A DNA stretch of 59,490 nt, counting the filler, from Dugesia japonica (lineage: Eukaryota): NCBI GenBank assembly GCA_001938525.1. It is 4 parts of 4 records of this genome, joined end to end, with 100 filler letters (N's around TTAATTAATTAA, not from the genome) between each part and the next. Parts side by side here need not be neighbours in the genome. Positions count along the whole stretch, not along the records: positions 43,557 to 59,490 come from MQRL01636845.1; 3 more parts are not named here. One strand, given 5' to 3'. Position numbers and translations under genes: made by a program. Position 1 is the first letter of the stretch. Each line of letters begins with the position of its first letter. Below are positions 40,661 to 59,490 of the stretch, piece by piece. Below the pieces are notes generated by a model that did not search any database, was not told the origin of the DNA, and worked only from the letters and a program-made list of their open reading frames with translations.

Positions 40661-43600
40661 TGAATAAAAAGGATATCAAATCCTAAAATTAATGTTCATT
40701 TGACGGATTCAACATCGCTCTTAAAATTATTTTATTGACTATTTATTACGATTGTATAACTGAAATTAAATAGTCATTTAAACTTTGTAAATAGTTCGTT
40801 TTGATATTCTTTAATTGCCTGATGATGACGGTTATTCAGACAAAATTGATTGAAACAAATAAATATTTTATTTTTATGAAAAAGTTGCCAATGTTTATGA
40901 ATTTTTTTAAATACAGATTTATATTAATTTTATAGAAAATTTATTAAAGATTAAACTTTTTTTTAAAGATTTAATGAATTTAATTCAGAAAATGACCAAA
41001 TATACAAGAATGGTTAAATTCAATGATAATTTGAAAAATTTCAATGAAATAATTATAAAAAAACCCAGTGGTATATTTTTGTTTGTTTGTATGTAGCATC
41101 ATTATAATCACATCCATCAATAAAGCTGGACCAAAATATAATACGAACATTATTTGAAATTGGTTATTTATCCATTAATATTTATAAAAATAATTAAAAT
41201 ATACTTTCAACGTCGTTGATTGAAAATGAAATTTTCCGTTACTAATATTTAATGCAAATTTTAATTATTGATCTAAAAATACTAAATAAATTTCTTAAAT
41301 AAATGTTGGAAATCTAGATGGATCAATTCCCATTGAAGGACATAAGAATATAGTTGATATTATAAATGACTTCTTTGAAAGATACAAAGAACATATAGCT
41401 ATTCTAGAGATTACCAATAATGGTTTCATGTCTTGTTAATTTGTATCACTTTTCAGATGCATGTTCAGATTCATAATTAAAGCCGCGTGATATTTCTATT
41501 TTTCATATTTCTATGAATACAAATAAAATAAGAAATAACCTTTCTTGAATAATCGATATATTAATAATGGATTGTATTATAATTATTATTATTGATTATG
41601 ACAATGTGAACTTTTAATTAATAGTACTTTTTATTTATAATATTTTTTAATTTAATTTAATTTAATTACTTTACTATTATTTTATTTTAATGTTAGACTT
41701 GATAATTACTTAACATTTTTCTAATAAAAAAATTCTATAACTATTTGTCTAATTTATTATTATTTTTAGTAAGTCATTTATATCCCTTAGAGCAAAACTT
41801 TATGAATTATTATTTATGTGGGCATATCCGTTTAGATAAACTGCGTAATAAAACTGAAAATGTTTTATAAATCGCATATTTTAAAATTCGCATTTTTTGT
41901 GACAAATAACACTGACGTCTAGTAATTAAATATTTTTATCCATTCTTTATGAATTTATAAAAAACTATATTATTTTAAAGAGTAATAGATTTTTAGACTT
42001 ACCTTCTACCTAATTTACAATTTTAAATTTAGAAATTAAATAAATTAAATAACCGATTATCTATATGGTTGCGATCCATGTTGCATTTTAAAATAAAGAT
42101 TTAAATGTTATAACAATGGATTTTACGAATTTCTTGGGAGAAATATAAGTAAAAGACCCGAGTAATATAATTGTTTTATTCATACAACACTTAAGAAAAC
42201 TCCAACTCTCCACTGACTCATTCTATTAAGTTTTATTATTTTTTCAAAATGTTTGCATATTTTCGATAAAGATGTATAATATATTATTTCTATATATATT
42301 ATTTAAATTATATATATTATTTATCTATATATATATATATTATTTATGTCAATAATTTTCAGTCACTTTTTAGCCAACTCTCTTGGCAACAACTGTCAAA
42401 CATTTACTGACCTTCCTAATAAAATTGTCTAAAAATTTACCCCTCCCCCACAAATTAACAATATTTTAACTAATATTTTTTATTAATTCAAGTTATTGCA
42501 AAAAAATTTGTTGACTGTAAAAATTCTTCAAATCACCTCGCTCAAATTTTGTTGAGATAATTAATGGACGGCCTCATTGTTATCATTATTTCTTTAATAT
42601 TTTTATAATTCATACTAAATTCGAACTTGTAATTTATTCAACTACTGTGATCAAAATTTCAAGTATAGTAAAAATAATCCAAATAACACGTTTAGTATTA
42701 CCATTGGATTCTAAACTTTTGTGAAAATCTTCTCATTTCATAAAAAATTAAATGTATAATGGAGTAAAATCTTAAAAATTTAAATCTATTTCCCTTTAAA
42801 AATAGTTTCTTACGAAATATTTAAATGAATTGAACAATTTTAAATAGTTTAGATATAAATGAATTAAATTACAATCTAAATAACTATTAAGTGAACATAA
42901 ACACGTTCAAACATTTTATTTTAAAATAATTTTAATTTAATTTATAATTTTAATTTAAATATATTAAGTAAAAATTTACTTGTATTAAGGTTTAACATCC
43001 AAAATACTATTAAAAATTTTATTTCCATAAGCATTGTAAATTCACAATAATATTTAAACTTTCAAATTTTAGATGCAATTGGTTTAATCTGATTGGTTTT
43101 ATAAACAAGCCAATAAAAAGCAACAAAAAATTCAAAGCATTTCCCCTTTAAATTCTATTATCTTAACTAACTGTAAAAAGCCACTAATAAAAACTGAATA
43201 ATAATTACTGTTTAAAGTTTGAAAAATCTAAAAAGAATTTTATTTTCTGATCTATCTGTTATTAAATAAAAAAACATTAGACCAATTACAAAAAGTAATA
43301 TTTTTTAGTGATTCTGAATTTTTTTTGTTTAGTCTAAAGTTTCAGAAATATTTTATTTGAAATCAGTAATTGTTTTTACAAATCTGAAATACAAATTTTA
43401 AGTCGAAGTAAAAACAACACTCTAAAGAACAAGGCTAAATATTTATGATTCGTGTTNNNNNNNNNNNNNNNNNNNNNNNNNNNNNNNNNNNNNNNNNNNN
43501 TTAATTAATTAANNNNNNNNNNNNNNNNNNNNNNNNNNNNNNNNNNNNNNNNNNNNAAACTTTACAAAATATGAATTCAAAATGATTACACAATCGGGTA

Positions 43601-44327
43601 AATAATTGGTTACATTTTTGATGACTAAATTGCGTACAATATTACCATCAAAATTCGGCAAAACATTTAATTCTAAATATCTTTTGCGTAGTCGTAACAA
43701 CCAATAAAAATGCTTCAATTTTTAAAACAATTTGTGGGGTAGGAGTGTTCTGATGCGCTTCTATCAATCTACTATGGAAGAATATGATCCGAACGGAGAG
43801 CGTAAATCTAAAGTAAGAAGATCAATTGAAAAAAAAAACAGCATGTTACATAACACTTTACAACGAAAATAGAAGAATTCAATTAATTCCCGAAAAAATC
43901 TATAAAAAAACAACCTAGCACTAAATTTGATTGAATATTGTACGCATATTAATAGAGTGTGAGTGAATAAATGGATACTGTTTATTTAATTAATTTTTTT
44001 TATATCCATCCACTTAAGTATAGATTTTCAGAACCGATTATTTACGAAAGTCGAGGTCTGTCTATATAAAAATAATTTTTCTTTATTTATACATTTCAAT
44101 TTTATATTTCAATATATTATACATAATTTTTTCAATATAAAATTTATCAAAAAAACCATTTATTAAAATTATATTAATAAACCTTTTATAAATAAAAGTA
44201 AGCTTACAGGAATGATTAACCAGAATAAAAATGAATAAAAAAATAAATATTCCATAAAACTATTTCAGATACAATGAAAACCGTAAAAAAAGATTTTCAA
44301 AATAGTTTAGTTTTAAAAAGTTTAGTG

Positions 44328-44693
44328 TTAAATCTTTGCTTTTAAACGTTTAATTACAAGATATGATTTTAAAGGGAATACAACTTTTCCATCAAATAGA
44401 ACTGGTTTACTTTCATGAACAAGACTCACACCTAATGCAGGAGCATTGTATTTCTTATGAATAATTTCTAATGATATTCCAATTTTAGCATCCACGATCA
44501 CTTTAATTTTTGAATCAAAATAATTCAGGCAAGACAACTGAATCGATGAAACTGGCTTGATCAGTTGTGGTTTAATGTATAAACCAGTTTTACGAATTCT
44601 TAACCCTAGTATTCCATAAAGGACACTATCTACATAACTAGAAGCTGATGGAAGATATGAACCGCTCCATAAATTACTGTCATTAGACCAAAT
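44328..44693 (-). CDS. PGGHG: PGGHG-like last exon
   Basis: Follows a 49-nt intron; ctttag|ATT TGG; IWSNDSNLWSGSYLPSASSYVDSVLYGILGLRI...KAKI*. Confidence 0.85.
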   Translation of the reverse strand: MWSNDSNLWSGSYLPSASSYVDSVLYGILGLRIRKTGLYIKPQLIKPVSSIQLSCLNYFDSKIKVIVDAKIGISLEIIHKKYNAPALGVSLVHESKPVLFDGKVVFPLKSYLVIKRLKAKI

Positions 44694-47600
44694 CTAAAGA
44701 ATCAATCATTATATAAATCTCTACTAAGTGGTATTTTCTAACTTTGAATGTATTATTTGAAAATTTTAAGAGTTGTTTCCAAAGTTTGAATGTGACATCG
44801 AATCTCTCTGCTTCAATGTTACCAATTAACAAAGTCGACAATGCCATAGGACTTGGGTTGTTAATTATTCGCTGTGACAAAAAATTTTTAAACAATGTAT
44901 GCCAATAGCACAAATATATTAATTTTAAAATGATTTAATTATCTACAACCGTGTCGGGCAACGTATATGTCTCAAAAAATTAAGAAAAATATATAAAATT
45001 GCTAAGGATTTTCCGTTTTTTAATAGGTAAATAAAATTTAGAAAAAAACGATTTTTTTAAAAATTAAATTTTTTGGGGAATTTTCATCAATATTGAGTCT
45101 CTTATAAGCCTTATTTGTGCTGATAAACCATCTTAGTGTTCTCACTGATCAAAAATAGTTATTTCATGTTCTTTATAACATATTTCTTTATTAAATTATT
45201 TATCACGTTTTAGAAATTATCAGGTTTTATTTTATGGTTGTATCTCGGAAAACTTTTTCGTGGTTTGGTGTGATGCGATACGAAAAACGGAATTCGCCCG
45301 AAACGGAATTAAAATAAAGACTTGATTAATTGAAAATTAAATTAAGCATTCTAACTGGGAAAGTTTTTATTAATTTTCTTTAAAAACTAAAATTAACTGG
45401 GTACAAATGAGTAATCTATGCGACAATATGAAATCAAGGTAAAGTGTAAACAATTAAACGAAATTTCATCAAAAAAGTCATCGAAAATAGTAAACTTATC
45501 ACATAGGTATCGTCAGTGATGATTCATCACACTTGTGATTTAACGCTTTAAAATATAAATCAATCAAACTGCTTTGAATGTAAATATTAGAGAAGCGGTT
45601 TACAAACTTTTCAAATCTGGAAACATTTAGCAAAAATAATAATTCTGGAGGAACACTTTTTTATATAGGGGATAAAATTTTATTTTTATTAATTAATTGG
45701 TATTTAGTTTTCTTTATTCGGAAGTCTTTTCTATCTTCAACGGAACACTCATGTTCCGGAGAATATCGTTTTGAAACCGGTTTGTTAGAGAATATCTAAA
45801 ATTAAAAATTTATTTTCAATTGAATATTCAATCAAATTCAAACATAAACTTCGCTAATTTANNNNNNNNNNNNNNNNNNNNNNNNNNNNNNNNNNNNNNN
45901 NNNNNNNNNNNATGAGCTGTGTACATTTTATTGAAACAATTAAACAGCTTTTGGGCTTCAAAAAATATCTTAAAGAAACCATTCTGAATAGAACGAATGG
46001 TTAAGTATTCTTAAAGTCATTTTTAAAATCAATTATATTAAGTTTGGATTGCATAACTCTGACAGAACTTCCACACCAAGGTGATCAAATGTTACAAGTA
46101 GATTTCTTTCTCTGTTAATAAGAAAATTTCGTGAACTTTATTATTCAAATTAAAGTTTTTAGCATGTGGTCATTCTATTGAAAATATTATGTATAATTTA
46201 TTATTGTAAATTTAAATTCTAAAAACAATGACTAAAAAGTATAAGTTACATAGCAGGTCTTAAAAATTACGAGCTTATTCTAAGAATAAATTTCAGGAAA
46301 AAAAAACTTTTTAAAAATTTTAATAATAAAATTCAAGAAATTTTTATTTTAATAGAGAAAGAAACTCACTTCTTACAATGGTCAGCAAATATGTGATCGC
46401 CTTGATATGGAAATTCCTTGAGAGTTTTAAAATAAATACTTCCTATAAATGATTTTTACAAGCGACCTTAAGATTACTTTATGCATTTTCTAGAAAAAGG
46501 TAATATGGAAATGTTAAATGATTTCTGATAAATCTTAAGTGTGATATGGTAAATTTTTGAGTAATAGAAATTGTGCGCCAATTTTTAGCCTTGGCTTTGA
46601 TAAAAATAAAATTCGACCATCTGTGGAGCAAAGACAATTTTTCATAAACCACTTGTTTATTTATGGTTTAATTTATAATTGCGACAGAAGAAAAAGACTT
46701 TCATGAAATGATTATACTAAAACTAATGTTGTTAAGTAAAAGATTTGCAAATAAAATGTGATTGATATATTTAAATACTTGAATTAATACTAAAGTAAAT
46801 AACGATAAAAAAAGATCAATTCTGAGTTTGTTTCTAAAAGTTTTATCGCAACATTAAAATCCTTAACAAATACATAAAAACTAATAAATTTTTTCAACGA
46901 AAATTCACAATGACTATGATAAAATTTAATAACATACTTTTTCATAAACTTCCACATTTCGAACACCAGAATCAAAATCTACCAATGAATCTAATGGGTG
47001 TCTCAACATGACTCCTTCTGGGTAATCGATTTTGTCTTCCGTAATTTTAAAATTTTCATAAGGTGGGTTGAAATTATTCATTTTGTCAAATGGAATTTCG
47101 ATTGAATCAGAAATATTCTGCAGATTGTGCATATATGAAGACAAATGTTCTGAAAATTTAACGTCCAAATAATGAAATAAAACTGGTAGAGTCTTTAAAA
47201 CTTCTTTTAAAAGGCCGATATTAAATACCGATTTTTTTACATTGGAAAGTAAATTACTCGGACCAACAGAACCTAAATTTCAAAATTAACAGAAATGTAA
47301 AACGTAACAATGTAAAAATACTGCATAATAATCAATTTTAATAGACTTTACACACCGTTTTATTGATAATATTATAATTATAAAAAGTCCAAAAAAAAAT
47401 TACAAAAATTTTCTCAGTGAAATATGAGGTTGGCAACTGAGCAATTTGCACATATTTTATAAGGAAAATAACTTATTACAAAAACTTTTCCAAAAAACGT
47501 TTTATATTTTTTTCAAATTTTTGAATTTATCTTCTTCAGGATTTGTCTTCTTCACAATTTCTGAAGAAGATAAATTCGAAAATTTGAAAAAAATAAAAAA

Positions 47601-50600
47601 CGTTTTTTGGAAAAGATTTTGTTATTTTAATAAAAATTTTAAAAAGAAACATTTTTTTGAAACTTTTTTTTATCTACGTCTTAGTTTATTTTCGTAATTT
47701 TGAAAATATTTAATTTTTTTTGTTTTATTATAAGGTTAAAGTTTGGTGATTTTTAACTATAAATATTCTTGACGCCTTAGTTTATTTTACAATTGCAATT
47801 ATTGCGAGAATAATTGTTGGACTTAACCATGAAGAAATACTAATCAAAGAAAGTATTATATTATAAACCTTGAATAAATTATAAAGTAAAATCCTGACGA
47901 AGACAAGGTCGAAATATCGATTTGTTATCCAATATCAATAATTAAAACCTAAATTTTGATCTAAGCTTTTATATTAAATGAAGCCTTAGTTTATTTTCAT
48001 AATTTTGAAAATATTTAATTTTTTTATTTCACAGATCAATAGTTAAAAATTTTTAAAAAGTGAATAATTACACAAAGTGTAATTTTCACAATAAACAAAA
48101 TAATAAAACCAAATTTGAAAAGTAAACAAGTAAGCAGTAAAGGGTTCCAATACGAGCGCTCTTAAATTCCTGTATATATTAGTTGTTCTCTGCAATATTA
48201 ATGTTAGATGTTACATCGAGAAATATTTAAAATTTGAAAAATTTGCAATCGTTGGTAAAACTAAATTTAAACAAATTTTATTAACAATTCTAATACATTT
48301 CATTTACAATTTAATTATAATAATTTTTAACAGAATAATGCTTATTAAGCTTGTTGAGTCATTTATTATTCTCAAAGGGAACTTTATTTTATAAGATAAA
48401 CTTATTTTCCAAGCAAAACTATTTATTTTTCAAACTAAAATTTTTACTTTCCATGTAAATATTATAAACAACCTTCTAATTAACCATTTTAATAATCATA
48501 ATATCAAGTTAAAAAAAAAGATGTGTATATTAAATTGTTGGACATAGTGGTAGTGGGAAAACTCTGTTTGTGTGTAAATTATTGAAATCAAAATTCAACA
48601 AAATCTATTGACACAGAGGAGTACATAAAAAGCATGGATTGGCCCAATCAGAGTTCTCTATGGAAAGCAACAAATATTCAAAGAGCGAGACAAAAAGATG
48701 GTTATCGAACCATCTAGCTTACAGTTTGAACAAGCCAATGTTGAAAATATTTCCAACAATAACGTATAAAACCTTTGGTATTGATGATTTATAGAAAATA
48801 GATTTGATGAAAATGAAAACTTATTCGAGAATTAATAAAAACTGCAAGTATATTTTAAAATGTATCGATGTATAATATACATTGTATATAGTAGATTTTC
48901 AAAACCTGTAGCTAAAAAATCCAAATATGCTAATGAAATGAAATCCGAAATCAAGACAATGTTAAATAATGGTTATCCAAATAATTTATAAACTGATTTA
49001 GGTAAAGAATTTAACAATTAAAAAGACAAAAATATAATTAATCATCTCAAGATAAACAATTATTCTGTATTTTCACAATAAAAAGCAGTATATGTTGAAA
49101 GATTTAATTGTACAATCAGAGATGGATGAAAATTTACTTTGTAAATAACAGAAATAAAAACTGGATACACGTATTAATGAAAATAATTTATGGTTATACG
49201 AGTACAAGTCATAAATTATTAGATGTAACAAGACCCGTTGATGTATCATCTGAAAATTCAATGAATGGTTATTGAGATAAAAATCAAAGAAAATTAAGAA
49301 ACCTAAATATTAAGTTGGTGATCATGTTAGAATATCAAGGATGTCAATATCATTGTTGGAAAGTTCAATAAACAAGAATTATAATAATTCCACCACCAAC
49401 AATATTTAGAATAGACAAGATTATTAAGTCAAAGGTAACTAAGAAATAAAAACAATTATAAGTAAAATGGCATGGATACGAAAAACTTACTTGGATATTA
49501 GCATCACAATTAGTTAACAAATGAACACAACGAATAATTTCTATACACCTTAATCTAGTTGTTCAAGTATTCATCCAAATAATAAAAGATTCATTGTCAA
49601 ACTTGAAATTCCTATTTATTTAGAAGTACAATGGGAAGTAGCCTTGTTGGATTATACTTTTCTATAAATTACATTTCAAACCTATACCAAATCAATGATT
49701 GAACATATATGAGGATCATTAAAATGATGGAAATAGTTATTGCAATTGATGTTGCTGTTGATTTATTTAATAATAGAAGAAGGCCATAATGAAACATCAC
49801 GAATATGATTTCATATTCTAAATATTAAACATGTAAAAAGATTTGCCTTTTATAATTTTAGTAATGATATTTCAAATACAAATATTATTCCGTTTTAGGC
49901 TTTAAAAATGATAGATCGATGGAAACAATGAAAGTAAAATCGAAGTCTTCAATAAAAACTACTAATGCATATTTTAAAATTTTCGATGCATTTAGTAGAT
50001 TTGCAAAAGCTGTAGCTAAAAATCAAAATCTGCCAATGAAATGGAATTCGTAATGAATAAAATGTTAAAAAATGGTTATCCAGATAATTTACAAACAATT
50101 TCAAGATGAATTATACGTGACATATTTGCAACAGCACAAATAATTGTTTTGGTTTATTCAAAAAAGATAAGATAAAATAAACAAAATGAGCTTTGAACAT
50201 AAAATGAAGAAAAATCAATAAAAACTTACTAAATTCATTTTTATTAAAGACAGAAAGCCAATACGTGTTTATTTCTTTCAATAATTTTATTCCAGTATTC
50301 GAGGCGAACATGTATTTATCACCCGTTATCATTAAATAATGCTTCAATGCCAATGCAATCATACCTGTTGGAAAATGTATATTTCTGCATAAGTCCTGAG
50401 AACATAATTCTTCTCCTTAAATGATAATAACAATAAACAAAATTATTATGATGATATATTTTATGCATAATTTTTCGAAAAAATTACATTACTTATTATC
50501 CTTTCCAAATGAACTTGTTTTTTAATTATTTTAATAATAGTATATAAACTTGACAAAGATCAAATGTTGGAAAATATGTTAAATGATGATAAAATTTGAA

Positions 50601-53600
50601 ATAATAGTAAAGTAAATTTGAGAAATAGATTTTAGATTTTGTATTATCATATTTAAAACATTATATCATTGAATATATAAATATAAAACAATTTAAATAA
50701 CTGCTTTTAGTAAGTGGAATTATTGGTGATGATAAAAAATATTATAATCTTGAGTTAACAACACGTATTAATAAACAATGCTAAACATGCTAATTTAATT
50801 TGAAGTAAACAGGAAAATTTTTTATACTAGATAATTTGAGTGCAGGTCGGACAGTATGAAATGTCCTATGGATATCTACTAGCAGAGTTTCAAAGACTGG
50901 GTTATTACATGAGGTTTTTAACAACCAAAATCCACCGATAGTAATGCATTAAAAATTTGCTAGCTGATATAGAGTTTCCCTTTGATAAACTTAATATTAA
51001 TATAGTATATATATAAAAAAAAGATAATGAATTTAACTATTAAAATTGATGTATGAGGTACAGATTGGTGCTCAAATCCTGTCAATGATAAATCAATACT
51101 GATAGTTCCATACAATGAATAAGATAGAATACATTTAAGACCAAGTGAAAGGAATTAAATGATTAGCACTTATAATGAGCTTCTGGGATTGAGTTGATAA
51201 TCTATTTTTTGTTCTGGAAATACGTAAGGTTATCTTTAACCAAGCACCTGTCACTATCAAACAACACTAGCTAGTTAGTCTAGTACGAACCCAAGGGGAC
51301 TTAACTTCCAAGATAGGAAAACAGGTAATAGGACCATTACACTGATGATTCTTGAACTCTCGATTAGCGATGTTGATGTTCCGGGAAAAGAAACTTAAGG
51401 AAGAGTAGATGAAGATTTTGTAGGCATTAAGCTTTTTACCAAGATAGGCGAATATAATTTTGTATCTTTTAGATTCACGATGATTGATTTGAAAATGAAG
51501 ACCAGCATTTGTTAAGAATCCTTGCCAATGTACTAAGGTACTGGTGGGTGTTGAGAAAGACAATCTTTGGTATTGGTTATCCAGCGATGATGATGCTAAG
51601 ATTTCTAATACCATGTGATGTTTTCTAACCGCATTTAGCAGGATTAAACTCCAGGCCGCTTTACAGTGACAAGTAATTTGCGGTATCAACTATTATTCAG
51701 GTTTAGTATTATTTTTGGTAATCATAACAATATCGTCAGCGTAGGCCAACATGAAAGTCCGACAAGATGAGATTGATGTTTTGGCATTATCTAGGTTACA
51801 ACATTTATTGAGAATAAGATTTCGCCAGGTGTTGAAAAGCAAAATAGATAACGGACAGTCTTGATTAGTCTTGAGGAATAATTTGCAACGTTTGCAGTCC
51901 AATTTAAATTGTTTTATTTATTAGGTTGGTGCAAAAGTAATGCAAATTTTAAAAGTCAACAAAATTTATTTAAAAAATAAACGATAACAATTCATTCGGA
52001 AGTATACCCTCCACCAGCATTTATGACAGCTTGTCATCTTTTACGAAGCTCACGGATTCCCTTGTCAAAGAACTCAGACTTATTTAATGCAAAATAGTCG
52101 ACCACCCATTTTTCTACTTCAATTTTATTTTTGAAATTTTTCTCCAAGACAAGTTGCTTCATCGAACGAAATAAATAATAATCGGAAGGTAGCAAGGTCA
52201 GGGCTGTAGGACGGATGAGGTAGTATTTCCCACCCCGAATTCTCAATTTTTTCATGGATGATTTTCGAGATATGTGGTCTTACATTATCATGAAGAAATT
52301 TTATGGTGGTTGAATTGATTCCTTTGTTTTGATAAGTTTGGTAAACTCTTGTCAATTTTTTCAGCATAAAGATTGGCATTCACTCTTTCGCCTTATTTCG
52401 GCACTTTAAAATGGACCCATCCTCGAGAATTCTACCACAAACAGAGTATCATTATTTTTCCGTCAATCGGAGCTTTGGGGACTCTTACAGCAGCCTGATT
52501 TACGGCCAACCATTGTCTTTTGGTATGAGAATTATTGAAAGAGATCCAAGTCTCATCTGACGTAAGAATTGATTCCCAGAAACCGGAATCTTTTGACATT
52601 TTCAGTAGAATTGAGCTTATAATTACCCTGGCAGGTTTATTGATATACGTCAAAGCATGTGGAATCCCTCTCCCACAAAGATTCTATTTTACAAGAATAT
52701 GCAAATGTCTTGGTATTGTGGTATGGTCATGTTTGAATATTTCTGCCATTCTTCATCCCGTCAATGTTCAAATATTCATCCCCTTCATTAAACCTTTTAA
52801 ACCATCTTATACATTGCGATTAGCTTATGACACCATCACCGTAAGCTTTGCAAACATATGCATGGGAAACCTTTGCTTTTTTGCCAAGCTTGAAATCATA
52901 TAAAAGAGATGCACGAATTTTGATTTTTCGATCCAATATATGTAAATTCAAATTTATATAAAGATTAATATATATATTTAACGATCAATATAAGGATTAA
53001 GATTAGTAAAGACTGATACTACATAATTTTATCAAAAAGAAATTGCTTTTCCTAAAGAAACACTGCTGACCATATAAAATAAACCTGATTGTATTATTTA
53101 TGCACCAACCAAATAGATAAATATTAATAAAATATAATATAATTTAATTTATTATAATATCCATAATATAATTTTCAAATTACATTTATTTTTAGATAGT
53201 TCTGTGGCTAACTAATTCTATACCAAATATGATTTTTAAGAATACTTTCGGTCTGTAAATAAAATATTTATATTTTTAGAAATTTTTTTCTACATAATAC
53301 TGAAATAAATTTTAAGTAGTATATTTTTTGATATTATGTCAAGTTAAAAGATTGCTAATGTAAAGAAAAGCCTTGGGTGAAACGAAATGAAATTTTGGCA
53401 ACTGGGAATTTTAATGCGTAGATTAATATTAATATTAAATATTTTAAAAAAACCATTATATTTTATGGTTCAAAAAAGTATGATTAAATTTATTTACTTA
53501 TTTTAAATAAGATTAATCAGCTTATATTCTGCTAAATGTATAATTATAATTTTTATTGGGTTTCGAGTGAATGTCTAAATTTGTGGTAATGGAAAGATGT

Positions 53601-54979
53601 GAATATTGATTGAAAAATTTTCAAAATATAGGGAAAAAATATGAAAATATGATGAAAAACCCCGTATACATAATTTTAGTTGTGTATTTGTCTGAAGGAA
53701 ATAACGCTTCAATTCAACTAAATATTAAAAAACCAATGAATTGAAAGTTATAAAGATATTATTAAAGTAAATAAATGACTAAATTTTAAATAGAACATTA
53801 ATTAAAATTTTTCGATTGCAAATATTATTTTGTACTGTAAGAAATTAGAGTTGAGCATAAAATTAAACTTTGAATTTCGTAAAATTTGAAATTATATGGA
53901 ATTTATTATTAATCTGCTACAAACATGTAAAAATTGTGAATATTGGAAACTACTAATGAAGTAGGAGAATAAAAAAAATCTAAATACATAATTTCCTAAG
54001 TCTCTATGCAAATTTGTTGTTACGCTCGAGTTATGGAGTTTTTCCAAAATTTTTTAAAAATTTTAATAGTTATATAGTATTTTTTCAGACCATTATGGAA
54101 TTTTTAAACTTTTCACTTACAAATCGTGATTTTTGACGGGCGATACCCTAGTCTTTTAATATTTTCTTTCAATTTTTCAAATAAACTTAGATCTTTAGTT
54201 GAAAAATAAAATTACTTACCTAATTCATTAGTAACAGCAGGAAATCTTGCCCCTTCAAATCCAAACATCTTGGAGTTTTGATGAGCCATAGATAACTGAT
54301 CTAATCGTTTCTGTAGCATAGATTTAACAGATTCTGGATTCATAAATGTTTGATAGCCCATCATCCATAATTCCTGACTGTATTCGATTCTTCCGTTACA
54401 ATTCACTTGCTATAGTGTATAACTGTAAATTTCTTTACAGAAAAATTTTTAAAAAAACCAATAAATTCAAATTTAGTCGAGTAAAGAAAAATACCAATTC
54501 ACATGAAGTGCAAGTTTTTTAAAATATATAATTATTAAATTATTTCATGTAAATTTTATACTATGAAAATATTGGTTGCAAAAAATTAATGATATGAATT
54601 AATGTTCAGCAAATTATAAAAGTGCAGTGTAAAACATTAAAAGAAAACAAAATGTTTGCTAAATAAAAAAATAATTAAAAACTTAAAGTTAAATTAAATA
54701 AATTTAGAATGGAAAATAAAATCTATAAAGCGTAAAATACCATTCCGGATCCAACACCTTGGTTAGACATAACTCCTAATCCTGAAGCTCCCATTGCTCC
54801 AGTTTTGTCTGACCTACCGAAACTTGGTGAATTAGTAATTAGTAGATATTGAGCCGATATTAATGGTACATCTAATTCATCAGACATTTTCATAAATATA
54901 CCACTATATGCCCATATATAATTCCATGTATATGTATGATTCGAATAAAGTTCATTTTCATGTTCCATTAATGAGATAC
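44328..54979 (-). CDS. PGGHG: Glycoside hydrolase family 65, PGGHG/ATHL1-like protein (six exons; 5' part not found); catalytic residues appear lost
   Basis: Exons 54979-54741, 54409-54220, 50415-50230, 47272-46938, 44871-44743 and 44693-44328 join through GT..AG with matching phases and no stops. Product is colinear with PGGHG: LYSNHTYTWNYIW, NGRIEYSQELWM, GFEGARFP, YWLS, IEIPFD...FNPPYE, FK|IWS, SVLYGILGLRI. Confidence 0.85.
44743..44871 (-). CDS. PGGHG: PGGHG-like exon
   Basis: tcacag|CGA...AAA|gttag; RIINNPSPMALSTLLIG...NNTFK. Confidence 0.82.
46000..46480. repeat. Imperfect inverted repeat (MITE/foldback) in a PGGHG-like intron
   Basis: ~46001-46145 is an imperfect reverse complement of ~46322-46480. 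Confidence 0.6.
46938..47272 (-). CDS. PGGHG: PGGHG-like exon
   Basis: atttag|GT...AAA|gtatgt; SVGPSNLLSNVKKSVFN...IEIPFDKMNNFNPPYE...RNVEVYEK. Confidence 0.88.
47472..47630. repeat. Foldback hairpin with ~70-bp arms
   Basis: ...ttttccaaaaaacgtttt...gaatttatcttcttcag / ctgaagaagataaattc...aaaacgttttttggaaaa. Confidence 0.85.
47889..47923 (+). ncRNA. Minimal type I hammerhead ribozyme
   Basis: AAATC CTGACGA A GAC-AAG-GTC GAAA TA TC GATTT: CUGANGA and GAAA boxes, stem II GAC/GTC, stem I AAATC/GATTT, AUC cleavage triplet. Confidence 0.7.
48500..50110 (+). mobile_element. Polinton remnant in a PGGHG-like intron: packaging ATPase, integrase, chromodomain, minor capsid
   Basis: Walker A GHSGSGKT (~48540); KTFGIDDL...YILKCIDVY; YKVKWHGYEKLTWI; MNTTNNFY...IHPNN...WEVALLDY. 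Confidence 0.88.
50230..50415 (-). CDS. PGGHG: PGGHG-like exon
   Basis: tttaag|GA...TTT A|gtaagt; EELCSQDLCRNIHFPTGMIALALKHYLMITGD...YWLS. Confidence 0.85.
51190..51900 (-). mobile_element. RLE-type non-LTR retrotransposon RT fragment
   Basis: QDCPLSILLFN, LAYADDIVMI and FAYLG motifs. Confidence 0.85.
51921..53113 (-). mobile_element. Mariner transposon with both TIRs and TA TSD, inactive
   Basis: TA-TTAGGTTGGTGCA...TGCACCAACCAAA-TA; ILTSDETW, HDNVRPH, HPSYSPDLA and PSDYYLF across frameshifts. Confidence 0.95.
54220..54409 (-). CDS. PGGHG: PGGHG-like exon
   Basis: ctatag|CAA...TTA G|gtaagt; NGRIEYSQELWMM...GFEGARFP. Confidence 0.88.
54741..54979 (-). CDS. PGGHG: PGGHG-like exon
   Basis: gtgtag|GT ATC...GGA ATG|gtattt; ELYSNHTYTWNYIW...SAQYLLITNSP. 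Confidence 0.85.
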
Positions 54980-56559
54980 CTACACATAAATTAATAATAA
55001 AACAATATTTTCAATCGAAGTATAATTTTATGAATTTATGAATATTTCTTGGTAAATCAAAAATTCATATTAAAATTCAAAATATATATATAATTTTAAT
55101 AAAGTTTTAACTAAACCGTCCTCACTGAATTTTTTAAGCTCAAACTTATGCATATTAATAAGTTATCAGTGTAGTTGATAATCAATAAACATTAGTTTGT
55201 CATCCAATGGGCTTTATTAGCTGTTGTCAAACAATGTTGATTCGTCGTCAATTAAAATTACAAGATATTAAACACATTTCGAAGTTATTTTTTCCAGAAA
55301 AATATTTCAAAAATAAAAGCTTAAAGATTAAATAGTCAAAGATAATTTCTTTATTTTTGCAATGTGTTGTGACTGTAGGTGGATTACGAAAATCTTAACT
55401 ATTTACGTAGTTATTGTGACTTGAAATCGAATAAGCGATGTCGAAATGAAAATAAACAATAAGATCTGTAAATTTATTATAAGTATTAACCTTATAAGCA
55501 ATTTTTCATTATTCGCATGAACAATTTTATATGTTTCACAATGCATTGCAAAGTGGTAAAATAACAGAACATTATAATATTCGCATATTTTCAAATGATT
55601 TCCAATTTCCAGAAATTGTGCTGATTTTCTTCTGGGACATTAATTTCTTTATTAAATTGAACTTTATCAAGTTTTTACAATTCTACTGAATTTTCTAACC
55701 ACTTTCTGTGTTGCAGAATTAATTTTGTCATTTTTAAGATAAATAAATTTCATAAACCTTTTTGATAATTGCTTTCTTTTTGTTTGCAAATCATGATTTT
55801 TGAACATAGTTACTTTATGTTTCTTAACTTATTTCTCCTGGATCTGATTGGATTTTTTTCAAATAAAAAATCAATTAATATTTTTTTTCATTTATTACTT
55901 TCATTATTATTTTCATTAATTAATTATTTTTTCCTGATAAATAAATTATTAGTATTTTTTTCTTTCTTTTCTTTCCAAAAATAAAATCAATGCTTCTTAC
56001 ATACATTTTTATCGGTTTTTAATGATATAAATCAGACCTGGTCAACTTAAATGGCTTCATGCGTCATTTTTTTTATTTTGTAACATTATAACGGACACTT
56101 TAAATAAAAAATGTTTTCTTTAAAAATTTAACAAGTAATAAATATACTAAATCAAAAAAAAATTATTATTAATTCAAATTTAATGTTTGCGCATTATATC
56201 AATTTTCATTTATTAAAATATTTTTACAAAACAAAAATAGTTTCTGAAAAAAATTACGGCGGGCCGCGTGTTGGTGAGGCTTGATATAAATCAATGTTTT
56301 AGAATTACAATTATTGCGAGAATAATACTTCAAGTCTTGTGGTTTACGGATATACACATAGGTAAAATAATAAATAAATGTGGAACAATATCCAGTGCGA
56401 TCATGGAACTCAAGCACGGTAAACATCAAAATCTTGGAAACCAAAAAAATTTAAAAACTAATTACGTTCTGATATCGGATTATATCGAAAACCCGATAAG
56501 ATTCAATAATATACAAACTAGATTACTTATGAAAAGATTCGAATTTCCTTTCAATCATT

Positions 56560-57131
56560 TCGAAAAAACGATAATCCAATAGAAACACTAAAATTATATA
56601 GTAATTTATTCTATTCTATAGTAATATTGATCCAGGACAACTTCCACTCTTATCAAAGAATTTTGCAGAATATGTACAATTAGTTCCGGCAATGATAGAT
56701 GTAGCAGATGAATGGCAAGATTATTTAGACATAGCATCTGGTGAAGTAATCCATGCTAATATCAATGATTTTTGGCGTGCTTTAGAGGACAGATTACCTC
56801 ACTTAACAAATCTTGCTAAAGTATACATAGCGTTGCCAATCTTTTCTGTTGATGCTGAACGCTCATCCTCGAAATATGGATCGGTACTATCGCCACTAAG
56901 GTATTCTCTGTCACAGCAAAATTTAAGAGCCTACAATGCCATTTAATTTAATAATAAATAATTATTGCAATATTTTTTTCATTTAAGTTTGATTTGAGTT
57001 TTTTTGCATTTAATTATATTTCACTGTGAAATTATTACTAATAATTTATTGCGTAAACTAGCACATTACGTCATCTGCAGTATGCCGCGGAATTTAATAA
57101 AATTTTTGCCACGATAAATCGTGGGCCCTAG
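56560..57131 (+). mobile_element. hAT transposase C-terminal dimerisation domain and probable 3' end
   Basis: FWRALEDRLPHLTNLAKVYIALPIFSVDAERSSSKY...R.SL; putative end ...GGGCCCTA near 57130. Confidence 0.85.
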
Positions 57132-58559
57132 TAATTTATATTGTTATACGATTAAAAGAAGAATCATAATAAACAGAAAAAAACAATTAAATAAAATATT
57201 CACAGGAAATTATTTTAATTTATTCAAAACTCAGTTTCTAATAAAATATCAACTAATTTCACTAGAAAATAATATTAAAAGTTATACATTTGTTAACTTT
57301 TAACACAGCTAATTGGATAAGAAAGACAGGAATATTTACCACATGGAATGATTGCTATTCCTGGAGCTACATAATCCAAATGTGTTTTAAATATTAAAAA
57401 AACAAACAATAATCGAACCATATTACATTGTATTTACATAATTCTCAAAGAGACTCTTTCAGACTCCATACAACTATAAATAGAAAGAATGTTTTAACTA
57501 TTGTTTTAAAAAATAAATTAAAAAGAAATTTCGAAAAATAAAATTTTCTTCATTAAAGTTTTGTTTATACAAAGACTTTTTATTTCAAAGTAATATTGTC
57601 TCTTTCACATAATTTCATAATTTTCAATGAAATCTATTCAAATAGAGTTTATAATTTACATAAAATAACTGTTTTATTATTTTTGATTAAATAAATTATT
57701 TTCTGTATGATGAAAATAAATTTGTTTACACAAAGATTTTTTTTCCTCTAATAAGAAACTTTATTAGTATTATTAAATTGTCGATAATAAACATGTAAGA
57801 AATAAGTAATTATAAAATATCAAAACAATAGATAAATAATAAAAAGTAAAAAATAATTTTAAAATAAATTATAAATGTTTTACAATTGCAATTTTGCGAG
57901 AATAATAAAAGTCAATTCCTAACAAAGACAAGCTCAAAATATCGAATTGTTATCCAATATCAATAAATAAAACCAAAAATTTTGATCAAAGCTTTTATAT
58001 TAAATGAATTAAATTATAAATATTTACATTATTTATATTAAATTGTATTTTTTTCAAACTTTTACAAAGTAATGAACGCCATAAAATTTAGCAACTATAG
58101 AAAATAAGAAAAGTATAATTCCATAATTAAAATTTAATTTTAATTAATTGAATTTAATTTGAACATTCTCAGTATTATTTGAAAAGAATAAACTTTCTTT
58201 AATTTAAATTTAAATAAGATTACAAATGTTTTTTAAAATTTCAATTTTCAATATATTAAAATAAATTAAGTGGCTTCAAAATTATTGTAATTAATAATTA
58301 TATCCATATTCATAAGTAGATAATATATATTAATTAAAACACAATAAAATATCAAATTAAACACAATTTTTAATTCTTATTTTACATAATAATTAATAAT
58401 TTTATATGATACAGTTCATACAATATTAATTTTTACTTTTTTTGAAATTGTTGCTAATTTTTAAATATATGGGCAATATTTTTCTGCAATTATTTTTAAT
58501 ATATATTTGTTAAATCTAATACGCAATAAATAATATTCAAAAATTTTATTTATTAACTT

Positions 58560-59080
58560 TTGAAAAATTTATTAATTAATATAATTCAAATTCTAATATA
58601 AAATTCTATAAAATGAAAATTATTCCTAAAATATTTGAAAAATAAATATAAGATACAAGCAGTTTATTCGAGTCCATATCACCACAGTGCTATACTAATA
58701 GTACGACAATTTAGAACAATTAGAGATCGTATAAATATAAATAACGAATAACAAGAACAAAAATTGGTCAGATTTGATTCTGGAAATTGAATTTTCCATG
58801 GATGCTTCAATTTAAAAAACAACAAAAAAGAGAGCAGCCGAACTGGGTTTTGGTTTAAAAATAAACAGAATAGCATTGCATAAAACCTATAAAATGCAAG
58901 GTAGAAATGCTAGTGGAACAGAATTAGTAAAAAAGGATAATCGACATAAAAATGAAAAAAGATGATGGACCGTATAAAGTGACGAAACGAATACATGAAC
59001 GAAGTTAGGAAATTACAGATATAAAGGGTAGAAAATTTATAAGAAATATTGTGTGGCTCAAAAGTTTTAAGAAAGGGGAT
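58560..59080 (+). mobile_element. Gypsy integrase C-terminal fragment with polypurine tract
   Basis: VYSSPYHHSA...RQFRTIRD, DGPYKVTKR (GPY/F motif), AAGAAAGGGGA just before a likely LTR. Confidence 0.8.
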
Positions 59081-59490
59081 TTTGATGATATAATTAATTA
59101 ACTAATTAATTTAAATTATATACGTATTTATATTTGTGTCACATGATTCATATAGTAAGCTCTTCGATAGATATTTAATCTTTCATCTTAATAAAAATGA
59201 AAATTATGATTAATTTAACCTATGATAAATTAAATCATAGATTGAGATTTGATATATATATTGATGAATCAGAAGTGATTCAGTTTTTATTTTTGTTTTT
59301 TAATAAATAAATATAATAATATTTGTATTTCTTGCTGCATGAAAAATTTTATATTATTCCTTTATTACCAGCATCCATAATTTCAGGTTTCAAATCAAAC
59401 AACATTTTGAAAATTTTATAATTTTTCGATTTGGTCTGAAACTTTAACAATCAGTTCCTTTAACAACAATCTTTTCGACAATTGTATAAT

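Follow-up and report, generated by a model that had tools for sequence, protein, structure and literature searches.

Descriptions of glycoside hydrolase family 65 (GH65) to date are of active enzymes only, namely hydrolases, phosphorylases, and one transferase, and mutation of either the general acid or the general base is described as inactivating (PMC11442529). Here, we consider a GH65-like gene of Dugesia japonica (assembly GCA_001938525.1), which lies in the piece at positions 43557–59490 (MQRL01636845.1) of a stretch of DNA of 59,490 nucleotides, filler included (the window). To the interpretation that it encodes a transcribed and selectively maintained GH65-derived pseudoenzyme of the PGGHG/ATHL1 branch, with a re-purposed pocket, we assign a probability of about two in three; no GH65-derived pseudoenzyme was found in literature searches.

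The structural reference for the hydrolases of the family is the crystal structure of the α-1,2-glucosidase FjGH65A of Flavobacterium johnsoniae (7fe3), in which the glucose in subsite −1 is held by Trp343, Asp344, Lys538, and Gln539 (called completely conserved across GH65), subsite +1 includes Trp391 and Glu392, and Glu472 and Glu616 act as general acid and as general base, the E472Q and E616Q variants having <0.1% activity (PMC8626586). For human PGGHG, Asp301, Glu430, and Glu574 are reported to be essential (PMC10077716, citing Hamazaki and Hamazaki 2016; PMC11442529); by alignment, Asp301 is the Asp of subsite −1. The tubeworm Lamellibrachia luymesi has a PGGHG/acid-trehalase-like paralog, ATH1, in which the acid Glu430 is replaced by Asp and which occurs beside a canonical copy (PMC10077716). 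Like ATH1, the D. japonica gene is an animal GH65 paralog without a catalytic carboxylate; however, ATH1 has a single conservative Glu-to-Asp change, whereas the D. japonica gene has lost the acid, the base, and the sugar subsite as a whole.

Of the described families, PGGHG/ATHL1 (EC 3.2.1.107; human structures 9sd4–9sd8) is the best match, with the same order of helical linker, barrel, and C-terminal β domain. The D. japonica gene differs from it in its low identity (22–25%), in the replacement of catalytic and sugar-subsite residues, in that the N-terminal domain was not seen, and in forming a very long separate branch. FjGH65A is the best Protein Data Bank match of exon B (E 1.2e-6) and shares barrel motifs with it, but its eight acid, base, subsite −1, and subsite +1 residues are all replaced (0/8 kept).

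Non-enzymes derived from glycosidases are known elsewhere, among them the GH18 chitinase-like lectins, the insect imaginal disc growth factors, α-lactalbumin, Klotho-type GH1 domains, and heparanase-2. In these proteins, a glycosidase fold has stayed under selection after loss of the acid or base and is used in binding or signaling, and much of the sugar-binding groove is usually kept. The D. japonica gene is unlike them in that the glucose subsite has been replaced as well.

Predicted active-site residues and fold of the GH65-like protein

The spliced model was compared with a family profile of 689 positions representing 118 canonical PGGHG-type proteins of 600–900 amino acids (from vertebrates, tunicates, a nemertean, and a dictyostelid). 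A preliminary description of the locus, which compared motifs by eye, had read GHVFWD as GRIEYS, PDEY as PSNL, KQAD as DYPE, and VWTEN as IWSND, and these readings are borne out both by the profile columns (n = 118) and by alignments to human PGGHG. The canonical residue is present in 118/118 proteins for each of G, H, F, W, and D of GHVFWD, for P, D, and E of PDEY, for K, Q, and A of KQAD, and for W and E of the WxE motif, which in this gene is WSN followed by D. A further motif, FPWES, in which W and E are each canonical in 117/118 proteins, is FPAVT. In human PGGHG numbering, Asp301 is replaced by Ser, Glu430 by Asn, and Glu574 by Asn, as had been proposed, and all three columns are invariant (118/118). 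The change extends to Asp429, the neighbor of the acid Glu430, which is Ser (exon D); to the Trp, Asp, Lys, and Gln of subsite −1, which are Tyr, Ser, Asp, and Tyr (all four columns 118/118 invariant); and to the Trp-Glu pair of subsite +1 (117/118 canonical), which is Ala-Val. Direct phmmer alignment of the exons to human PGGHG (9sd4–9sd8) and to FjGH65A (7fe3) gives the same register.

As aligned, therefore, the general acid, the general base, the four subsite −1 residues, and the subsite +1 Trp-Glu pair are all lost, which goes beyond the three residues named in the preliminary description. This argues against residual α-glucosidase or phosphorylase activity, and the protein would be unable to hydrolyze or phosphorolyze α-glucosides and would have a non-catalytic role. 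Having lost every residue that binds and cuts glucose, the protein most likely was once an enzyme and is now used non-enzymatically. The preliminary description had suggested a maintained, non-catalytic GH65 fold, possibly a lectin or scaffold for glycosylated hydroxylysine or another sugar. The first part gains support from the replaced carboxylates together with the intact frame, the expression evidence, and the purifying selection described below. The second part is weakened, because a simple lectin that recognizes the glucose of glucosylgalactosylhydroxylysine is unlikely when its subsite has been replaced (Tyr, Ser, Asp, and Tyr at subsite −1; Ala-Val at subsite +1).

Membership of the family is clear from the profile alignment, in which the spliced model forms a single domain over positions 220–680 of 689 (196 bits, E 3.8e-62), in line with the GH65 profile check that had been proposed. 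The open reading frames (ORFs) of exons A, B, C, D, and F each match the profile separately (E 5e-6 to 7e-11), and single exons match the solved human PGGHG chains directly in phmmer; exon B aligns to 7fe3, 3wiq, and 9sd4. For the Pfam family Glyco_hydro_65m (PF03632), exon B scores above the cutoff of 27 bits (Table 1) and exon C scores 19.6–20.8 bits. The C-terminal β domain is reached by the profile alignment, which runs to position 680/689, while the corresponding Pfam match (PF03633) is weak (E 0.11); residues 563–651 of human PGGHG align to an ortholog, P0001, that covers this C-terminal region. The near-invariant columns of the family (≥97% conserved) that are retained (32/86) are mostly scaffold Gly, Trp, Pro, His, and Arg. 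The helical linker, the (α/α)6 barrel, and the C-terminal β domain thus appear to be retained at the level of sequence. Judged in the same way, the gene is a member of the PGGHG family that departs from an active member in every feature tested.

Reading frame, evidence of transcription, and selection

The gene was first traced as five stop-free stretches of the minus strand that resemble GH65 proteins. It runs from 54979 to 44328 on that strand in six exons (Table 1), which join into 480 codons with no stops, as the preliminary description had stated. The exon borders are AG/GT, all five introns are GT-AG, and the exon phases are consistent. Given the 0.070 stops per codon seen in the introns, ∼34 stops would be expected in 480 codons, and a stop-free frame of this length would arise by chance with a probability of ∼7e-16; read in its two other frames, the coding sequence contains 41 and 48 stops. 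The exons have a GC content of 0.32, vs. 0.18–0.28 for the introns, in a piece that consists of AT-rich, animal-type DNA (GC 0.15–0.35). The introns measure 331, 3804, 2957, 2066, and 49 nucleotides, of which the fourth length is nominal because the intron holds an assembly gap. The profile alignment is unbroken over the D/E junction (...VEVYEK to RIINNPSPMAL...), with no profile segment lost, and the acceptor of exon E lies at the identical codon in the contig of a relative (L001, below); the gap therefore alters the length of intron 4 alone, and neither the frame nor the exon content.

Compared with canonical PGGHG, the gene has seven residues fewer at the C–D junction (50230/47272), just ahead of the former acid motif. 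The positions of the two splice sites are closely fixed here, by a GTAAGT donor and by a stop codon 8 nucleotides upstream of the exon D acceptor, so that the shortening is a real deletion rather than a mis-called border. We also reject the idea that the gap, or a missed exon of the kind envisaged in the preliminary description, hides a PDE motif: the profile alignment continues through exons C, D, and E, and the stop codon fixes the acceptor of exon D.

Evidence for expression comes from the share of sampled sequence words found in small RNA-like sequencing runs. For positions 44331–44934, each of twelve such runs, drawn from five studies, contains 0.75 of the words, vs. an exon-only expectation of 432/574 = 0.753; because the share is that of the exons, these runs hold exons E and F and not the 49-nucleotide intron or the intron upstream of exon E. 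For positions 46938–54979, fifteen runs, three of which (X10, X12, and X13) are also among the twelve, hold 0.11–0.17 of the words, vs. an exon-only expectation of 830/8012 = 0.104. These shares point to spliced mRNA.

Two relatives, from other AT-rich lineages, were recovered over exons E–F. One is a UniParc protein of 162 amino acids (P0001), which has 62–63% identity over exon F and ∼56% over the covered part of exon E, runs straight through the E–F junction, and has the motif IWSNE; its encoding contig was sought and none was found. The other (L001; ENA assembly ERZ27256860, contig k141_3173519, 620–1195, plus strand) is a metagenome contig with a GC content of 0.28 that carries an ortholog's last two exons (129 nucleotides and a terminal 360 nucleotides); their positions are as in the D. 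japonica gene, with an intron of 87 nucleotides in place of 49. Because L001 carries these exons, an AT-rich eukaryote with this gene was present in the ERZ27256860 sample. Over 163 codons, L001 is 51% identical to the D. japonica protein without insertions or deletions, and has the motif IWIND. All three lineages share an Asn in the place of the base.

Between the D. japonica gene and L001 (exons E–F), the NG86 (Nei–Gojobori) estimates are dN 0.38 and dS 1.87, for a dN/dS ratio of 0.205 that is approximate because dS is saturated; the maximum likelihood estimate is still lower. The preliminary description had envisaged orthologs with dN/dS below 1, and the terminal exons of L001 are of this kind. 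Identity by codon position (0.61/0.79/0.45) is highest at the second and lowest at the third position. These comparisons indicate purifying selection on exons E–F after the putative loss of catalysis. In the tree, the three lineages form a clade with an SH-aLRT (Shimodaira–Hasegawa-like approximate likelihood ratio test) support of 100, on a stem of ∼5–7 substitutions per site; the branches inside the clade measure 0.24–0.45. A long stem followed by short branches fits the pattern expected for a single ancient loss of catalysis and subsequent conservation.

Among the three lineages, conservation is strongest in the former base loop together with the next helix (IW.N[DE]S..W.GSY.P.A.SY.D...G..G..I...TGLY.KP.L). 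The sequence of events would be a single burst of change once catalysis had been lost, corresponding to the long stem, and purifying selection thereafter, corresponding to the short branches within the clade. Because this stretch is the best conserved, the former active-site pocket would most likely have been re-used to bind another ligand or partner, and the protein would be more than an inert scaffold. A more specific proposal, which we offer tentatively and at slightly below even odds, is that the gene and its two relatives constitute an undescribed and taxonomically narrow clade of GH65 non-enzymes, the pocket of which was stripped in one ancient burst and then held under selection (W-x-N-[DE]-S...GSY.P) for a new ligand or partner; this clade would be the first GH65 pseudoenzyme family.

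Searches for further members had little yield. An exhaustive profile search with exons E and F across 1.84 billion cluster representatives found no full-length ortholog, and returned P0001, a protein of 81 amino acids (P0002), and distant canonical GH65 proteins. A word search returned P0001 alone for exon F and nothing for exon B, and scans of metagenomes for exon D and for the E–F alignment gave no further loci. P0010, a member of the 90% cluster of P0002, is recorded from a JGI sample. A JGI metagenome (3300036111) contains an intron-less, partial GH65 ORF (P0009; L002, 20–880, plus strand) in which the acid motif (LDES) retains its Asp-Glu, S-R-P stands in place of K-Q-A, and the base position reads W-S-N. 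Its place in the tree is on the path from canonical PGGHG to the three-member clade (SH-aLRT 98); it may be of an intermediate grade, or its loss may have been independent.

The 5′ end and surroundings of the locus

Table 1. Features of the GH65-like gene and its surroundings, by position in the window.
Feature	Position	Strand	Description
Exon A	54741–54979	minus	Helical linker and start of barrel; in phase behind AG acceptor; profile match 219–297, E 5e-6
Exon B	54220–54409	minus	GRIEYSQELWM for GHVFWDxxxWM; FPAVT for FPWES; PF03632, 29.3 bits
Exon C	50230–50415	minus	Barrel helices; HFPTGM for HI(N/T)GD; PF03632 match
Exon D	46938–47272	minus	GPSNL for PPDEY; IDYPE for VKQAD
Exon E	44743–44871	minus	43 codons; followed by 49-nucleotide intron with GTTAGA donor
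Exon F	44331–44693; stop 44328–44330	minus	IWSND, last barrel helix, and C-terminal β domain
Assembly gap (N run)	45862–45911		Inside intron 4 (44872–46937); no coding sequence touched
Candidate polyadenylation signals	43990–44169	minus	3′ flank; AATAAA at 44164 and 44087, ATTAAA at 43990; pattern only
Mariner-type DDE transposase remnant	52037–52683	minus	Intron 2; three overlapping frames, decayed; HPxYSPDLA-like motif
Reverse-transcriptase fragment	51696–51917	minus	Intron 2; short ORF with YADD-type motif; RVT_1 E 0.017, below cutoff
hAT-family transposase remnant	56268–56946	plus	Upstream of exon A, on opposite strand; C-terminal dimerization domain PF05699 E 8.8e-10, above cutoff

The visible model is without ∼220 N-terminal profile positions, a point absent from the preliminary description. 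Neither tblastn nor the family profile on six-frame ORFs, with positions 57831–57877 masked in the profile scan, revealed the N-terminal β-sandwich (profile positions 1–218) in the 4.5 kb that lie upstream of exon A (54980–59490), and a Pfam search of 16 upstream ORFs gave no family match on the minus strand in this interval. One explanation is truncation at the N-terminal end: the locus would be a partial copy that starts at the in-frame ATG at 54968 (11 nucleotides inside exon A) and encodes a protein of 477 amino acids with linker, barrel, and C-terminal domain. In addition to these negative searches and the available start codon, the composition of the DNA upstream of exon A (15–28% GC, with a hAT remnant) is in keeping with truncation. 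However, a good AG acceptor, rich in pyrimidines, lies just ahead of exon A, and its phase calls for an upstream exon; since the known introns here reach 3.8 kb, upstream exons can lie past 59490. Furthermore, the N-terminal domain is the least conserved part of the protein, and even exon A scored only 20 bits. We regard truncation as rather unlikely, the alternative to it being a full-length GH65 gene with upstream exons beyond the end of the piece.

The preliminary description also spoke of introns full of decayed transposable elements, and such remnants were identified in intron 2, in the form of a frame-shifted mariner-type transposase and a weak reverse-transcriptase fragment. The former matches DDE_3 (E 0.0018) and Transposase_1 (E 0.0028), both below the Pfam cutoffs. 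Beside the latter is an ORF of 140 amino acids (51270–51689) with a raised GC content of 0.35 and no family match; the fragment and this adjoining ORF are probably the remnant of a long interspersed nuclear element. If the gene extends upstream, the hAT remnant would sit in the next intron. Further upstream, positions 57557–58556 are extremely AT-rich (GC 0.154).

Alternative interpretations and meaning for the GH65 family

A transcribed but functionless PGGHG pseudogene in slow decay, which lost its catalytic residues for want of constraint, would account for the loss of all functional residues and for the retention of as few as 32 of the 86 near-invariant columns. It would also be compatible with the absence of a full-length annotated ortholog among 1.84 billion cluster representatives, and with the failure to find an N-terminal domain in the upstream 4.5 kb. 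We nevertheless consider this improbable: there are 480 stop-free codons where ∼34 stops are expected, all five introns keep both GT-AG borders and phase, and orthologous exons occur in two other lineages. Across 163 codons there are no insertions or deletions, dN/dS is ∼0.2, codon-position identity follows the order 2 > 1 > 3, and the branches within the clade are short after the long stem.

There is likewise little probability that the protein is still an enzyme, in which relocated residues (the Asp or Glu of W-x-N-[DE], or the Glu of IDYPE) act on another substrate or by other chemistry. In favor of this reading, the Asp of KQAD has changed conservatively to Glu, no segment is better conserved than the pocket loop, and GH65 already covers hydrolases, phosphorylases, and a transferase (PMC11442529). 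Nevertheless, the general-acid position (GPSNLLS) has no carboxylate in its vicinity, every GH65 hydrolase and phosphorylase has the acid Glu, mutation of which abolishes activity, and the entire glucose subsite −1 is replaced. Because the general acid and the glucose subsite are gone, the Asp that follows Asn in WSND would not be able to rescue α-glucosidase activity. A processed pseudogene is rejected, as the gene has five introns.

Several points weigh against the proposal of a maintained pseudoenzyme. In each of the three lineages, the base-position Asn is directly followed by an acidic residue (Asp or Glu), which might in principle take up the place of the base; this residue also speaks for continued catalysis. 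The mapping of residues depends on sequence and profile alignment at 22–25% identity, and with 32/86 near-invariant columns kept, even the fold is predicted rather than observed. Support for splice junctions A–B, B–C, C–D, and D–E comes from homology and splice signals. The runs behind the expression evidence are presumed to be RNA, and that evidence consists of word shares rather than reads. The relatives cover exons E–F, so that the Ser at Asp301 and the Asn at Glu430 are seen in D. japonica alone. The saturation of dS and the failure to find the N-terminal β-sandwich, both given above, count on the same side.

The impact of a maintained pseudoenzyme at this locus would be limited, in that the clade looks small and the comparison across species covers part of the protein. 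Pseudoenzymes are a recurrent source of new binding and signaling proteins, and a conserved, expressed GH65 fold without the acid, the base, or the glucose subsite would extend the family, as a natural experiment in the re-purposing of an (α/α)6 pocket. For the annotation of invertebrate genomes, it would mean that labels such as “PGGHG-like” or “acid trehalase-like” need not signify collagen-deglucosylating or trehalase activity.

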